DNA of 64,000 bases, from the IMG/VR virus record IMGVR_UViG_3300032931_001151, positions 124,001 to 188,000 of that record. The stretch is one strand, 5' to 3'. The position numbers were made by a program, and so were the translations under genes. The notes under the pieces were generated by a model. The model did no database searches. It was given only the letters and a program-made list of their open reading frames with translations, and was not told where the DNA came from. Below, piece after piece: positions 6,533-56,173 of this stretch (positions are counted from its first letter, which is position 1; each line of letters opens with the position of its first letter).

Positions 6533-6540
6533 TATTTATA
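6533..6540 (-). promoter_or_regulatory. T4-type late promoter TATAAATA (tape measure operon)
   Basis: Exact consensus upstream of 6491. Confidence 0.7.
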
Positions 6541-8415: not shown

Positions 8416-10362
8416 TTATCCGTTTGATACGACTTCGGAGAAACTAACTCCGGTAGATACCGCAGTGAAAGTTAATGTAATAAATTCTGCAACTCTATTT
8501 GGCTTAACCATGATTTGAGCAACGAATTCGTTATTATCAATAACATCTGGGGTATTATTTGATGTATCGCAAACAACTTTATAGTCTGTTATACCTCTTT
8601 GCGACTTAATTCCGGATAAGAATGAATTGGCTAAACTTGAGAATCTTGCTCTTGTGAAGTCATCATTGAATTCAAAGATAAGGAATCTTGCCATCTTTTC
8701 AATGCTTCTTTCCATATTAAGGAATAGTCTACGAACATTGATACGATCGAATGCGGTTGGAGCAGCCGAAAGTGTCTTTTGACCCCAAATAACAACCCCT
8801 TGTCCAAAGAAATTTGGAATTGGATTGATTCTATTTGAATACATTACGTCTCTTTGGGCTTGATTTGGATTAATAGCAACCGCATTTATTCCACTAATGA
8901 TACCACGATTCAATCCAGCGGGTGCCCACCATTGAGCGTTGTTGAAATCTACATCTGCAATTATTTGACCAACATAACCAGCAACGGGAACCCAACGATT
9001 TACTTGATTATATTTGTCATAAATATTAAAATATTGTCCATATATTGCTGAATATGAAGAATTAATATTTAACGATCCCAATGGATCTCCACCTTGGACA
9101 TATGCTTTCATCAAAGAGTATGCATTTGCATAAGGCTTTGAATTGTTTATATTAAACATTTTTGATGCGGGCATACTTAAAATTGAGAAACAATCTTTAC
9201 GGATTTGACTTGAAATGAAATCAAGAGTTCTCTTAAGATCGTCAACATATCCTGGATCTAAAAGAAGATCTATTTCAAGAGTTTCTTTATTGGTGAAATT
9301 ATTAAACCATTGTTCTGAGATTTCACCCGTTAAGTTTCCAAGACTTGAACTTAATGAGTCCGCACCCATTAGATTGAATTGACCAGTTGATTGAACTATA
9401 ACGCCGTCTGCACCACTCTCTGACCCATCAACGAAGAAGTAGATATAACTACTTGCCCCATTTATAACAAGAGGACCAAAATCTCTATTTCCTTGACTAT
9501 CAACACTATCTGCATTTTTTGAAACTAAGAATTGTTCTACGAGAGATCCGGCAGGACTCCACACATATACGGCAAATTTATCTTGTTGCGCTATACCAAA
9601 TGCCGTAGCTGGAACTACTGAAGTATCCATTTCTATAATTGGACCAGTTTCAAATGAAACGTATTCAGAAAGTAAAGTTGTATTAATAGCATAATCGTTA
9701 TTAACATCAATTAATTCATCTCTTAATAACGGACTATCGGAAAGATAAGGAACAGCGGGGGATGAGGTTGTGGATGGAGTTCCATTGTACCAAGTTTCTC
9801 CAAGTGTTTGTAAATCATCTAGTGAAACAGCTTGAGAAATTTCTTCTTTGAATTGCTTTAGAAGATCATAATCTAAAGCACTTATAATAGATACTTTAAC
9901 TCCATCATAGTAAGGTCCAGCACCAACTGCGTAAACGTGGAACATTTCACTATCAAGAAGTTCTACATTTCCATCAATCGCTTCATGAGCAGAAATATTG
10001 TCATATGAAAGGGGATAATCGGAAACTGGTTTTTGAGTTGGAAGAATTGTTAAGTTTGCACCCGACAATCCAACCGTGGCACCCGCACAAAGGGTATTTG
10101 CATTTTCTGTTCTAACAACATAAAGTTTATTACTTCCACCTAAGAAGGCGGCGGATGTAAAGAAGTGTGGATAATTTACAGCGTCCGGTTGGCCGAATGT
10201 ATTAACATAGTCTTGCTCATCCGAGACAAGAGTTACAACATTAATAGGACCTTTTTCGGCAGCTACAACTATAGCACCGACCGAACTTGTTACGCTTGGA
10301 ATTCTTAGTGTTTCGTTCGTCTCTACTATTGCTACGCCGGGAGATTGAAGTACTATTGCCAT
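8416..10362 (-). CDS. gp18: Tail sheath protein gp18
   Basis: 'SPGVAIVE', 'WWAPAGLNRG', 'WGQKT', 'FDRINVRRLF', 'FEFND' sheath motifs. Confidence 0.95.
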   Translation of the reverse strand: MAIVLQSPGVAIVETNETLRIPSVTSSVGAIVVAAEKGPINVVTLVSDEQDYVNTFGQPDAVNYPHFFTSAAFLGGSNKLYVVRTENANTLCAGATVGLSGANLTILPTQKPVSDYPLSYDNISAHEAIDGNVELLDSEMFHVYAVGAGPYYDGVKVSIISALDYDLLKQFKEEISQAVSLDDLQTLGETWYNGTPSTTSSPAVPYLSDSPLLRDELIDVNNDYAINTTLLSEYVSFETGPIIEMDTSVVPATAFGIAQQDKFAVYVWSPAGSLVEQFLVSKNADSVDSQGNRDFGPLVINGASSYIYFFVDGSESGADGVIVQSTGQFNLMGADSLSSSLGNLTGEISEQWFNNFTNKETLEIDLLLDPGYVDDLKRTLDFISSQIRKDCFSILSMPASKMFNINNSKPYANAYSLMKAYVQGGDPLGSLNINSSYSAIYGQYFNIYDKYNQVNRWVPVAGYVGQIIADVDFNNAQWWAPAGLNRGIISGINAVAINPNQAQRDVMYSNRINPIPNFFGQGVVIWGQKTLSAAPTAFDRINVRRLFLNMERSIEKMARFLIFEFNDDFTRARFSSLANSFLSGIKSQRGITDYKVVCDTSNNTPDVIDNNEFVAQIMVKPNRVAEFITLTFTAVSTGVSFSEVVSNG

Positions 10363-10458: not shown

Positions 10459-12198
10459 TTAATCTTCGGATTGCATCTCTTTTTCAAAATTTTCCATGTC
10501 TTGTTCTGGACTTGTATAGCCATCCATGTTGAATATTTTCTTAAAATCACTCAATACTTCTTCGTCTTGAACTTCTTCGGGTCGAGTAGATTGTTGAACT
10601 ACTATTTTACTATAAAAATCATTTTTATTATCATCCCACCACTTTGACCTTAACATATATGATACCCAGTAACTTGCGGCTACTTGGTCGTCCATATTGC
10701 CATTCCCACGTTTAGCAGCAAACTTGCCCGGCTTATTACCCTCTTCATATATTCTTAATTCAACTAATATTGAATTAGCATATATCTTACATACATCACC
10801 TTCAACGTCTTCTTTGAAATTAGTAGTTGCCAAAGGCTTTGTTTGAGCATTGGCGTTTACGCCTAATGTTTGGTTGTCATAATCGTAATAAACGTTCTCG
10901 TAGCCCTTTTCCATATATATTTCGTTTAATAGAATGACGCCTAATCCGGTTCCATTATTTTCACATATAATAGAAGCATTATTATATCTTTTAGCTATAG
11001 TTTGTGCAATAGAAGCAAAATCAAATACATTTATATCATTTCTCTTGTATAGTGCTGCTAATTCATAGTAACCTTCTGTATAGTAATTAGTTACATCATA
11101 TATCGCAACCACCGAATTATCGCTTCCTGCTCCGGAAGATACGTCAAGACCTGCAATATATACTCTTCCGGGTTGAGGGTTAGACCATATGTTGAACCAT
11201 TGACTTTCTTGCTTAATAGGGGTCTTTATCATCTTACCCAACGAATCAAGAGCCGCACCACTTAATAAGGTCTTTGAAGAACCCTCAAATTTACATTCAT
11301 ACTCTTGCAACCACGACTGTAAGGAGCCGAGAGCCGCTATAGTGTCTTTCTTAAATTGCTCATCTCTACCCGGAACCTCCCACCATTCTACTTTGAATGG
11401 AGCAAACGGATAAGTACCATCTTGTTTATTAGCACTTTGCCAAATCTCGTAAAATAGGCCGGCTGGACCATTTGGAGTAGACACCAATATAACTTGACCT
11501 TTATTTCCAATAATTGGAAAATTTGATTTCCAAAATTTATCCGCAATATTCTTAGGAACGAATGCGAATTCATCACAAAAAAGTATCTTAGCCGAGAAAC
11601 CACGCAAGGCATTTTCGGAAGTCGCTGCGCCAAATATTGCCGACCCATTTTCAAATTCTATCTTTGTGTTATTATATTCCGTAACACCTGGCTTCATAAA
11701 TGCGGGCAATCCCTCGTATGCTTTACGAATATCGTCAAGAATTTCAATGGCATTCTTTTGCTTATTAGCCAAAACTGCTATATTGCAATGCTCGTTGAAT
11801 ATAGCCGACCAAAGTAGATATATACAAGAAGTTGTAGTGTTATGACTCACTAAACCATTAGAATAAAATTCATGCTCTTCCGAATCTACTTCAACGTCAT
11901 ACATATTCTCTTCATATCCAAGATTTGATATGTAATTACATGCATAATACCCAACGTCCGTTTCAATTAAAGTTCCAATTTGAATGTCTTGTAAATATAT
12001 CGGAGTATGATCTATTGTATAAAGAATATGTGTATCGGCGGCTTTTAATTCATCTCCGTTAACCAACTTAATGTGCCATACTTCATATGGTATAGTCTTC
12101 ATTACCTTATTGATATTTTTAAATCCTTGTGGAGTTTTTATAAGATAGTTAGAAGGTACGGTAAATACTTCTTCAAATTTTCGTATCGGTTGTTCCAT
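10459..12198 (-). CDS. gp17: Terminase large subunit, C-terminal part, preceded by split-intein IntC (aa 1-120)
   Basis: Intein block F/G 'MYDVEV...FYSNGLVSHN' followed by Thr+1; then 'LFCDEFAFV' Walker B, 'STPNG', 'QEYEC' and nuclease 'GLDVSSGAGSD'. SD GAGGA. Confidence 0.92.
   Translation of the reverse strand: MEQPIRKFEEVFTVPSNYLIKTPQGFKNINKVMKTIPYEVWHIKLVNGDELKAADTHILYTIDHTPIYLQDIQIGTLIETDVGYYACNYISNLGYEENMYDVEVDSEEHEFYSNGLVSHNTTTSCIYLLWSAIFNEHCNIAVLANKQKNAIEILDDIRKAYEGLPAFMKPGVTEYNNTKIEFENGSAIFGAATSENALRGFSAKILFCDEFAFVPKNIADKFWKSNFPIIGNKGQVILVSTPNGPAGLFYEIWQSANKQDGTYPFAPFKVEWWEVPGRDEQFKKDTIAALGSLQSWLQEYECKFEGSSKTLLSGAALDSLGKMIKTPIKQESQWFNIWSNPQPGRVYIAGLDVSSGAGSDNSVVAIYDVTNYYTEGYYELAALYKRNDINVFDFASIAQTIAKRYNNASIICENNGTGLGVILLNEIYMEKGYENVYYDYDNQTLGVNANAQTKPLATTNFKEDVEGDVCKIYANSILVELRIYEEGNKPGKFAAKRGNGNMDDQVAASYWVSYMLRSKWWDDNKNDFYSKIVVQQSTRPEEVQDEEVLSDFKKIFNMDGYTSPEQDMENFEKEMQSED
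11839..12198 (-). mobile_element. Split intein C-fragment (IntC, 120 aa)
   Basis: Block B-like 'AADTHIL'; terminal His-Asn codons at 11844-11839; +1 residue Thr (ACT, 11838-11836). Confidence 0.9.
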
Positions 12199-13354
12199 TT
12201 AATTCCTCATTTATTAAATTAACACAATAGTTAATTATAGCATGTTTGTCTTTTTTATAGTCCTTTTCTTTAATATGTATTATTTTTAAAGTAGGATTGA
12301 ATTTTATAATGTTTTCTTCTCTAATTCTATCCCTTTCTTGATTTCCCCTCTTTTCCCCGTGCCAATAATCCCCGTCAAATTCAATACATAGGTTAATTGA
12401 GGGAATAAAAAAATCAAGAAACATCATTTTCTTTTCGGGGGTTATTATCATATATTCAAAATTATCTCCAAATGGATTAATTATGTCTTCATTTTTCCGA
12501 GTTGCATAGTACACTTTTAATTCGTAAGGCAAAAATGACATTATGCTATTAAATAAATCTTGGGATATTTGCGAATAACCCTTACCATTATTCATCTTGG
12601 CTCTTGCTATTCTTTCAATTTCCTCGTCTGGTTTATTTAATAATGTTTCTTGCCATTTATTTTGTCTTTCTTTCCATCTTTTAATTCCCTCTTCCTCACC
12701 AAATTTTTCAATCATTATCTTTTTTGAAAATGTTTGTTGTCTCTCATGAACTTTTTGTTTTGCTTCTTGCTCGGAATATCCCTTTAGTACCCAATATCTC
12801 TCTGATGATGTTGACAAATGGTAGTCCGGATTTTCTTCTTTTCTTTTGGTGAGAGTATCCATCGCCCGTTCTATTCTATTGGTGTTTTTTGCATACCATG
12901 CAGTACTACAAGAAAAGCTACAAAAATCATTAAATCCCCTATCAAATCTAAATCCGTTCTTCTTTCCACATTGCTTACAATGGGTAAAATCTATAGGTTT
13001 CATCATATATTTAATATAATACTCTTCTGTTACCATATTATGTTTCTTTAAATGTCTACTTAAATTTTTCAAAGAGTCAAACAATTCCCCACATTCTTCA
13101 CATTTTATGGTTTTAATAGATTCTCTTCTCTCTTGTTCTAATTCTCTTGTAGATTTTATACTATGTACTTTTTTCTTGTGAGTAGCAAGAGAGATTTTAG
13201 TAGTGCATTTCTCTCCACACACATCGCATATAAAAGGAACTATTCCTTCATATTTCTCAAAATATTCTGCTATATTACACTTATGCACATCTCTTAAGTG
13301 TTGATATAAACAAACATAATTTGGGAACTCTTTATTACATAATTTACAAAGCAT
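12173..13354 (-). mobile_element. Free-standing putative homing endonuclease: C2H2 zinc fingers plus Vsr/DUF559-like PD-(D/E)xK domain
   Basis: Three CxxC...HxxxH fingers, a CxxC...CSxxC motif and C-terminal 'LDFFIPSINLCIEFDGDYWHG'; lies between the two terminase halves. Confidence 0.8.
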
Positions 13355-13374
13355 AGTTATTCTCCTTCATAGTA

Positions 13375-13394
13375 TATTTATATTAGTATACCAT
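13375..13394 (-). promoter_or_regulatory. Late promoter plus extended -10-like site upstream of the endonuclease and TerL-C
   Basis: TATAAATA at 13375-13382 with TGGTATACT just upstream. Confidence 0.65.
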
Positions 13395-13408
13395 ATAGGA
13401 AAGAAAGT

Positions 13409-13756
13409 TTAAATACTTTTTATCATATTGAAAAATTCTCCAATTTCTATCTTTTCAATTTTACCACTTATTTTGTCTAATATTTCAACATATTGTTGAG
13501 ATTGAACACATTTTCCACTTTGTCTACCACTCATAACAACTTTGTGACGATTTCCAACGAAATGCTCAAGTAGCCTTTCTTGGAACTCTCTTAAGTTAAT
13601 TACATGTTCTCCCGCATCACTAATAACCTTATAGTAATTGTTAGCAAAATATTTTATGTCTTGTTTACATCTTAAAATTTCGATAACTTGTTCTTCAGTT
13701 AAATTTCTAGTTTGATTTGGCTTTATAACTCCATTTTCATCATATGTAATTGGCAT
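13409..13756 (-). CDS. gp17: Terminase large subunit, N-terminal part (aa 1-82), fused to split-intein IntN (aa 83-115)
   Basis: 'EILRCKQDIKYFANNY', 'LREFQ' Q-motif and Walker A 'GRQSGK', then Cys1 'CVQSQQYVEI...IEIGEFF'. Confidence 0.9.
   Translation of the reverse strand: MPITYDENGVIKPNQTRNLTEEQVIEILRCKQDIKYFANNYYKVISDAGEHVINLREFQERLLEHFVGNRHKVVMSGRQSGKCVQSQQYVEILDKISGKIEKIEIGEFFNMIKSI
13412..13510 (-). mobile_element. Split intein N-fragment (IntN, 33 aa)
   Basis: Begins with Cys (TGT, 13510-13508) immediately after the Walker A Lys; block A-like pattern. Confidence 0.85.
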
Positions 13757-56165: not shown

Positions 56166-56173
56166 TATAAATA
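56166..56173 (+). promoter_or_regulatory. Late promoter for the lipoprotein gene
   Basis: TATAAATA 22 nt upstream of the ATG. Confidence 0.7.

Follow-up and report, generated by a model that had tools for sequence, protein, structure and literature searches.

We analysed a stretch of 64,000 nucleotides of the viral record IMGVR_UViG_3300032931_001151 (positions 124,001 to 188,000 of that record; hereafter the window). A single minus-strand open reading frame (ORF; 12173..13354), situated within a split intein of the large terminase subunit TerL, encodes a protein of 393 residues that combines, from its N to its C terminus, three C2H2 zinc fingers, a Cys4 zinc ribbon of the FCS type, a helical domain and a nuclease domain with a Vsr fold. 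We consider it probable that this gene is a free-standing homing endonuclease of the EDxHD family, lodged in an atypically split TerL intein and spread by homing. Fractured genes, the EDxHD (Vsr-like) family and the atypically split terminase intein have all been published previously, and the locus as a whole is no discovery. The new element is the C2H2 fingers as the predicted DNA-binding part of an EDxHD homing endonuclease, a combination described in none of the papers that we searched; one Joint Genome Institute record names a relative 'very-short-patch-repair endonuclease/uncharacterized C2H2 Zn-finger protein'.

A prediction made from the nucleotide letters alone (hereafter the original prediction) had described a homing-endonuclease-type gene with N-terminal zinc fingers and a C-terminal Vsr-like PD-(D/E)xK nuclease. 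The predicted fold supports this description, and all of the elements listed there (the ORF, fingers, ribbon, helical region, nuclease motif, a 54-nt gap upstream and the flanking sequences) were found in place. The protein has the general layout of the EDxHD family, that is, an N-terminal DNA-binding region followed by a C-terminal nuclease. Its binding modules are predicted, and they differ in kind from the NUMOD/helix-turn-helix (HTH) motifs described for the family. A further family trait, residence of the gene within a self-splicing element or interruption of a conserved gene, is seen in its location between the N- and C-terminal intein halves (IntN and IntC) of TerL.

Domain architecture of the endonuclease

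A full-length AlphaFold2 (AF2) model built from an alignment of 26 homologues has a mean predicted local distance difference test score (pLDDT) of 86.6, and the nuclease domain modelled alone reaches 85.9. In these models the C-terminal domain appears to have a Vsr-type fold with the EDxHD catalytic D/E/H/D set in place. The closest folds among solved structures were a DUF559 protein (3hrl, Z 10.2), the catalytic domain of I-Bth0305I (3r3p, Z 9.7, root-mean-square deviation 3.4, with 98/98 crystallised residues aligned), AbaSI (4par, Z 8.2) and Vsr (1cw0, Z 8.1). The full-length model yields equivalent Vsr-type matches, and Foldseek placed AbaSI, I-Bth0305I and PvuRts1I in its top ranks (probability 0.97 for 3r3p). 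The original prediction had named a Vsr/DUF559-like nuclease and had given the lack of a PD-(D/E)xK fold as the point that would speak against it; structure prediction shows a fold of exactly that type.

The motif IEFDGDYWHG is present, and D314, E325, F326, D327, G328, Y330, W331 and H332 are invariant in the 26 homologues; the Vsr motif is kept in all 120 relatives listed. An hhalign comparison with E. coli Vsr, statistically weak (E 0.013, single-sequence template), aligns D314 with D51, E325 with F62, Y330/W331 with F67/W68, H332 with H69 and D342 with D97. The residues aligned in this way are those named for the Vsr-like family (PMC2677866), and Taylor et al. gave the residue pattern the name EDxHD (PMC3239194). 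By sequence, the protein matches PHROG 3339, 'homing endonuclease' (7.6e-10), and its nuclease domain matches the Pfam families PvuRts1I-like_N and MTES_1575 below their cut-offs, with DUF559 seen only in relatives. Searches of solved structures with the single sequence and with the 26-sequence profile returned nothing relevant for the nuclease domain, which was linked to them by fold comparison alone.

All three fingers have the classical spacing CX2CX12HX3-4H. Three stretches of the endonuclease match the Pfam families zf-C2H2_4 (PF13894; 35.0 bits against a cut-off of 27) and zf-C2H2 (PF00096; 33.6 bits against 25.2), and a six-frame survey of the 214-kb genome showed this pattern in no other ORF of at least 60 residues. 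The hydrophobic core of Phe (spacer position 4) and Leu (position 10) is present in fingers 1 and 3. In finger 2 Cys replaces Phe, and its ligands C43 and C46 are at least 90% conserved among homologues. The fingers are modelled as strand-strand-helix units with a pLDDT of about 90 or higher and match C2H2 arrays in fold. Both sequence and fold searches of solved structures return such arrays (ZFP568, CTCF, PRDM9 and Zif268), and R2 retrotransposon proteins are found among the finger matches as well as among the nuclease-fold matches.

The fingers had been called eukaryote-style in the original prediction, a label that suits their ligand spacing and fits neither their linkers nor finger 3, which as a single domain is closest to bacterial Ros. 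The linkers span 18 and 20 residues (last His to next Cys) and each contains an extra helix (H28-36 and H69-79); they are not the short TGEKP-type linkers of eukaryotic poly-finger arrays, and therefore triplet-by-triplet reading of DNA is not expected. A profile of finger 3 and its helix (...H-x3-H-NMVTEEYYIKY) matches Ros (2jsp_A) in one stretch with 34.6 bits (E 9.8e-8); in the alignments shown, no single eukaryotic finger scores higher than about 22 bits with this profile. Fingers of Ros have the spacing CX2CX9HX4H. When applied to the endonuclease itself, the Pfam family ROS_MUCR (PF05443) scores 21.9 bits, under its cut-off of 25.4 (E 1.9e-4; best stretch 84-105), and the fingers have a 12-residue spacing. 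The family profile of finger 3 plus helix matches 2jsp_A. Finger 3 together with the helix that follows it may form a Ros/MucR-like module.

Finger number ranges from zero to four among the 120 best relatives listed, 110 of which have at least one C2H2-type motif. A single finger with 9-11 residues between the second Cys and the first His, and no 12-residue finger, is found in 76 of the 120, two or more 12-residue fingers in 19, and three or four in 6. Because short single fingers are the commonest form, the sub-branch that contains this endonuclease appears to have lengthened and multiplied a finger of prokaryotic type.

The CxxC...CSFSC motif pointed out in the original prediction is present downstream of the fingers (C126-x2-C129...F144-C145-S-F-S-C149) and is conserved across relatives, with the consensus CKxCG...DFCxFSCST; matches of the relatives' ribbon to YacG/Zn-ribbon families in Pfam are weak. 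The model is then helical across residues 147-272, and the homologue alignment shows Q206, F209, G219, G223, W227, R230, Q231 and W234 to be invariant. No PDB or Pfam family was matched by this middle domain, for which only weak zinc-ribbon matches were obtained, and the fold search with the full-length model was dominated by the nuclease domain. Presumably it is a DNA-binding or spacing module. The 'helical linker' of the original prediction is the most strongly conserved part of the protein.

Conservation was gauged by the ratio of nonsynonymous to synonymous substitution rates (dN/dS) between the window and its relative L001, the two being 75% identical in nucleotides (labels of this kind denote compared loci). 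The ratio is 0.10 for the whole endonuclease, 0.18 for the fingers, 0.04 for the ribbon and helical domain (residues 121-254) and 0.105 for the nuclease domain, with 0.08 for the TerL-C fragment and 0.43 for gp16. The endonuclease gene thus appears to be under strong purifying selection.

The split intein and its expression signals

The ORFs on either side of the gene bear out its proposed location inside a split TerL intein. The upstream ORF (13409..13756) encodes terminase residues 1-82 followed by Cys and 32 more residues (...SGRQSGK/CVQS..., the slash marking the junction), and the downstream ORF (10459..12198) encodes 120 residues up to GLVSHN and then TTTS... (...GLVSHN/TTTS...); with these flanks the gene lies in a split intein of TerL. 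The splicing motifs are complete, namely C1 (CVQS...), ...AADTH... and ...MYDVEVDSEEHEFYSNGLVSHN/T. The joined exteins, the predicted splice product, read GRQSGK/TTTSCIYLLW and match the uninterrupted terminase of L008. IntN and IntC align over their full length with contiguous inteins of 151-183 residues at the same site in other T4-like phages, and they are separated at a variable-length loop that follows the first beta-hairpin; IntN aligns with this hairpin. The combination of a short IntN, a long IntC and a free-standing gene between them makes this an atypically split intein. From these motifs we predict a class 1 HINT split intein of the atypical TerL type, inserted after the Walker-A lysine. 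That the endonuclease drove the splitting of the intein, as the original prediction suggested, is the model published by Dassa et al. in 2009 (PMC2677866), and the contiguous homologous inteins are compatible with it.

The start codon of IntC-TerL-C lies within the endonuclease reading frame, GAGGA is found 5 bases before that ATG, and L001 shares the resulting 26-nt overlap, which implies a probable translational coupling of the endonuclease and IntC-TerL-C. Because the endonuclease stop overlaps the downstream start in this way, the earlier suggestion that the insert could drive TerL-C is plausible, with the insert supplying expression signals of TerL-C.

The gap upstream of the endonuclease (13355..13408, 54 nt) contains, on the minus strand, both sequences listed in the original prediction, TGGTATACT (13385..13393) and TATAAATA. 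They fared differently as promoters. The frequency of TATAAATA in the window is that expected by chance (15 copies against 18 expected), and its support as a late promoter comes from placement: 14 of the 15 copies are located 19-76 nt upstream of the start of a same-strand ORF, and 9 are intergenic, though intergenic DNA makes up 5.4% of the window. With a placement beyond chance, the copy before the endonuclease is a candidate T4-type late promoter, and 8 of the 13 listed loci that carry an endonuclease have TATAAATA upstream of it. In the case of TGGTATACT, a sigma-70-type promoter was rejected since such hits are at chance level (21 against 20.0 expected in shuffles); the sequence lies in the 5' arm of a hairpin.

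This hairpin, the fold of the 54-nt gap, has an energy of -13 kcal/mol (z -2.94), equalled by 1 of 200 shuffles, and in it UUUCCU pairs with the Shine-Dalgarno sequence AGGAGA. In a small sample of 4 loci, 85.5% of the pair positions stay paired and 2 pairs are compensatory; sliding the partners lowers the value to 40-62%. A 51-nt fold starting inside the promoter was not significant (z -0.77), and a consensus fold of six loci gave no structure because the sequences are too heterogeneous. Dassa et al. reported TATAAATA within a hairpin upstream of the endonuclease together with an overlap with the downstream gene, and, citing Aeh1, a hairpin that sequesters the ribosome-binding site (PMC2677866). 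In the window, read-through transcripts would likewise hide the ribosome-binding site, and late transcripts starting within the hairpin would expose it.

Coordinates of the features discussed, as positions in the window
Feature	Position	Strand	Details
TerL C-extein	10459..11838	-	from Thr+1 (TTTSCIYLLW...), with Terminase_6N and nuclease domains; Terminase_6N E 8.5e-16
IntC, 120 residues	11839..12198	-	block B ...AADTH..., ends GLVSHN; Intein_splicing E 7e-4
Overlap of endonuclease 3' end and IntC-TerL-C start, 26 nt	12173..12198	-	Shine-Dalgarno GAGGA 12204..12208
Vsr-like/EDxHD nuclease domain	12176..12589	-	residues 256-393; D314, E325, D327, H332, D342; stop 12173-12175
Helical middle domain	12590..12907	-	residues 150-255; matches no known family
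Cys4 zinc ribbon, FCS motif	12908..12979	-	C126, C129, C145, C149
Zinc finger 3	13040..13102	-	residues 85-105: C85, C88, H101, H105; then helix TEEYYIKY
Zinc finger 2	13163..13228	-	residues 43-64: C43, C46, H59, H64
Zinc finger 1	13283..13348	-	residues 3-24: C3, C6, H19, H24; then helix NIAEYFEKY
RNA hairpin, 15 pairs	13361..13402	-	3' side with Shine-Dalgarno AGGAGA 13361..13366; 5' arm includes TGGTATACT
Candidate T4-type late promoter TATAAATA	13375..13382	-	21 nt before endonuclease ATG; hairpin loop and 3' arm
IntN, 33 residues	13412..13510	-	Cys1 ... IKSI; stop 13409-13411
TerL N-extein, 82 residues	13511..13756	-	ends in Walker-A SGRQSGK; L007/L008 align exactly to 13511

Other copies of TATAAATA are found at 6533, 10401, 10438, 17742, 22559, 24354, 28701, 29772, 33175, 34343 and 49168 on the minus strand and at 56166 and 61962 on the plus strand, and together they provide a candidate late-promoter map of the phage; the sheath gene (8416..10362) is preceded by two copies. 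The source record (G000; 214,200 bp, GC content 33%) carries the label 'provirus'. The window contains a T4-like virion module, with sheath and gp13/14/15/16-like neighbours (the relatives' genes match those Pfam families), TerL and late promoters, and the label looks doubtful. A look-up of public sequencing runs that might show expression or population variants listed none.

States of the terminase site and the case for homing

A word search identified 208 relatives of the endonuclease, all metagenomic. Genomic contexts were examined at about 15 loci (10 relatives looked up by identity and 5 from a scan with a TerL-N alignment), and every one of them is the same terminase site. Less weight falls on three of the looked-up relatives: L006 is broken up downstream and shows only Terminase_6C at its end, L091 comprises just 1.9 kb and has no recorded family hits, and the sequence of L002 stops short at its end. 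In most of the 10 looked-up relatives the gene lies between a short ORF that follows gp15/gp16-type genes and an ORF matching Terminase_6N, and the 5 further loci have the same arrangement. A megablast of the locus against GenBank phages gave no match; a scan of viral contigs with a single TerL-N protein found none, whereas the alignment query succeeded.

Across these loci the site is seen without an intein, with a contiguous intein, with a split intein and a finger-bearing Vsr-like gene, with a split intein and a Vsr-like gene that has another N terminus, and with a split intein that has no gene. The last of these states is that of L053, L072 and L080, in which inteins are split at the same break point with 68-113 nt between the halves and no endonuclease gene; no TATAAATA was seen in their gaps. 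These three loci represent the 'endonuclease lost' stage of the Dassa model.

In L007 and L008, IntN, the endonuclease and IntC are precisely absent. Over the first 130 residues of the C-extein these two loci have 95% and 92% identity with the window; the alignments end at 13511 and resume at 11832 and 11841, the first C-extein codon being at 11838. In a tree of the exteins, the element-bearing window and L001 share a clade (support 100/100) with L007 and L008, which lack the element, and the element-bearing L009 falls within a group of empty alleles (L027, L028 and L030). This tree requires 4 changes in the state of the element, and at least 3 of the changes are forced by well-supported (starred) branches. 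Cleavage of intein-less alleles at the Walker-A codons, as put forward in the original prediction, fits this precise presence and absence and is plausible.

We therefore propose the following course of homing, which remains conditional on the predicted functions. The endonuclease would be made late in infection, its zinc modules and helical domain would bind DNA beside the cleavage site, and its Vsr-like domain would cut. As its substrate we propose a terminase allele that has no element, most probably the intact Walker-A region carried by a co-infecting relative. Recombinational repair would copy the whole IntN-endonuclease-IntC unit, so that the endonuclease and the split intein would spread together, and the phage would tolerate the insertion because protein trans-splicing, as proposed, would rebuild TerL.

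Several points weigh against this reading. Element-bearing and empty alleles differ in about 25% of their nucleotides, and thus no transfer is recent. The scattered distribution could result from repeated precise loss, and a function different from homing could account for the strong purifying selection. No palindrome or obvious target was seen in the junction DNA of empty alleles, and its conservation is only at the codon level, as the protein requires. Some relatives have Asn where the alignment places D342. Finally, the hairpin is significant in the window only, with z values of -0.02 to -1.26 in L001, L009 and L091.

The main alternative is that the target is a contiguous, endonuclease-less mini-intein, cut at the present split loop. 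The gene would then spread among intein-bearing alleles only, and the intein-less pattern would come from independent gain and loss of the intein. Contiguous homologous inteins do occur at this site, their variable loop is precisely the place of the split, and one clade has contiguous inteins, split inteins with an endonuclease and split inteins without one as neighbours (L018, L080, L071, L072, L078). Dassa et al. also stress the loop as the integration point in a contiguous intein gene (PMC2677866). We nevertheless regard a mini-intein target as improbable: in the clade of the window and the other finger-bearing loci the nearest endonuclease-less alleles are also intein-less, contiguous-intein alleles being in other clades, and the boundaries of presence and absence are those of the intein, not those of the endonuclease. 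A different possibility is that an active nuclease is kept mainly for the benefit of the phage, by cutting the terminase of co-infecting relatives, or for the expression of IntC-TerL-C. Marker exclusion is known for the seg and mob genes of T4. The dN/dS of about 0.1 is as low as that of TerL itself, the arrangement persists to about 33-50% protein identity at the same site, and a related single-finger endonuclease is free-standing just upstream of an intact terL in Caulobacter phage Cr30. The obligatory 26-nt overlap and the lack of TATAAATA from the endonuclease start to TerL-C would tie TerL-C expression to the insert. However, such a dependence would constrain the 3' end and the promoter only, not the whole reading frame. 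It is also partly contradicted by the split alleles L053, L072 and L080, whose existence means that TerL-C can be expressed without the endonuclease. Exclusion and homing are, moreover, not mutually exclusive, and we hold maintenance mainly for either of these benefits to be unlikely.

Homing endonuclease genes commonly degenerate after fixation, and the gene could also be a decaying, inactive remnant or a DNA-binding regulator that has lost its nuclease function. Finger ligands have been lost in the relatives P0012 and P0019, and the Asn in place of D342 mentioned above points in the same direction. The endonuclease of the window, however, keeps every catalytic and zinc-ligand residue, purifying selection is seen in all three of its regions, and the Vsr motif persists throughout the relatives listed, which makes a loss of function very improbable and a dead remnant unlikely. 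Homing into intein-less terminase alleles remains the explanation that we prefer.

Further interruptions were observed at or near the same gene. The terminase of the closest relative, L001 (its endonuclease is 75% identical), has a second break (L001:6160-9275, against 11225..11336 of the window), with a 334-residue piece, then a 332-residue DUF7487 ORF (E 5.4e-23) and then a 387-residue piece; this break of about 1.5 kb is absent from the window, which is the empty allele there. The P0004 contig has the same layout, and P0005 has a similar middle piece of 335 residues. In L005, a free-standing ORF of 570 residues between gp16 and TerL-N (L005:1817-3529) encodes an HTH, a Ros-like finger and IEFNGVFWH, and the TerL-C ORF (1017 residues; L005:5094-8147) includes an in-frame intein bearing a LAGLIDADG domain; thus three selfish elements occur in or around one terminase gene. 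In the viral contigs L019 and L020 the terminase is apparently in at least 3 pieces; two distinct Vsr-like ORFs accompany it, and IntN is longer (65 residues).

Related genes also occur elsewhere. Outside the window, the same genome has a second ORF with a Vsr motif (G000:C1 ~108894-110054, plus strand; L004:616-1776), which encodes 386 residues with IEFDGKQH and has four DUF723/treble-clef-like repeats of about 70 residues in place of the fingers. It is probably another free-standing endonuclease. For Vibrio phage vB_VmeM-32 (L094:295-1355), the record notes a RecA-like (UvsX) gene interrupted by a SegG-like endonuclease, with HintC downstream. A distant homologue of the window's endonuclease lies close by, and the interrupted gene may be a further example of a fractured gene, here from a cultured phage.

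Comparison with known systems

Dassa et al. (2009; PMC2677866) described fractured genes that contain Vsr-like endonucleases, with hairpins enclosing the late promoters and with downstream starts that overlap, and they reported a gp17 terminase locus with an unusually long IntC. Our locus resembles that fractured gp17: in both, a split intein interrupts a conserved phage gene, and a free-standing endonuclease gene on the same strand separates the two halves. The published locus differs in being a metagenome fragment whose endonuclease type is unstated; NUMOD-3 is the sole N-terminal DNA-binding motif named there for Vsr-like proteins, and the words C2H2 and finger are absent from the text of that paper. 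Natural empty, contiguous-intein and endonuclease-less split alleles make the intein-breaking model directly testable at one site.

The intein itself resembles GOS-TerL and AceL-TerL, naturally split phage TerL inteins with a short IntN and a long IntC (37/115 and 25/104 residues, respectively, against 33 and 120 here) that are used in protein chemistry (PMC11766414). They differ at the splice junctions, with Cys1/Thr+1 in the window, Ser1/Cys+1 in GOS-TerL and Cys1/Cys+1 in AceL-TerL. From architecture and host gene only, we infer that the three are homologous.

Like the EDxHD prototype I-Bth0305I (PDB 3r3p), the endonuclease is predicted to consist of an N-terminal DNA-binding region and a Vsr-like nuclease with the same catalytic residue set, the fold match reported above being the link, as no match to 3r3p was obtained by sequence. 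I-Bth0305I cuts its empty allele beside the insertion site (PMC3239194). Its gene lies within a group I intron of the recA gene in a Bacillus phage, and the enzyme uses NUMOD/HTH motifs, in contrast to the fingers, FCS ribbon, helical domain and split intein found here.

Hef-type endonucleases of T4-like and Campylobacter phages and the Cr30 protein AGS81079 are distant homologues by tblastn. The Cr30 protein is 30% identical over 259 residues and contains the helical domain, IEFNGDFWH and a single finger of short spacing. These homologues have no more than one finger, and their genes stand free, next to genes that are intact or between them, with no split intein around them. In the cultured phage Cr30 (L093:3363-4385; KF301602.1 97991-99013) the gene, annotated as a 340-residue 'hypothetical protein', is directly upstream of an uninterrupted terL, an arrangement which suggests that the family began as a free-standing neighbour of terL. 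The likeness to Ros/MucR (PDB 2jsp; PF05443) lies in a finger followed by a helix ...EEYxxKY, and most members of the endonuclease family have a finger spacing of 9-11 residues; the fingers of the window's protein differ in being 12-residue spaced, repeated and fused to a nuclease.

One can go further and read these proteins as a natural modular zinc-finger nuclease lineage, in which an EDxHD nuclease kept one target gene and the C2H2/Ros-like fingers preceding it multiplied from a single one to three or four. We hold this reading to be rather doubtful. If true, the fingers may set or extend target specificity in a manner that is readable and swappable across natural variants, and the lineage would offer a compact phage-derived scaffold for programmable nucleases as well as a system for the retargeting of homing endonucleases. 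Finger number varies from zero to four among the relatives listed, and every context examined is this terminase site; comparing them could show how individual fingers contribute to target recognition.

Engineered zinc-finger nucleases (C2H2 fused to FokI) and R2 proteins share with the endonuclease N-terminal C2H2 fingers and a nuclease of restriction-enzyme fold. The endonuclease differs from them in its helix-containing linkers of 18 and 20 residues, which are not TGEKP, and in having no reverse transcriptase. Taylor et al. put forward the idea that the EDxHD domain could serve as the nuclease in artificial zinc-finger fusions (PMC3239194); on the domain predictions presented here, such a zinc finger-EDxHD fusion, once suggested as an artificial design, exists in nature.

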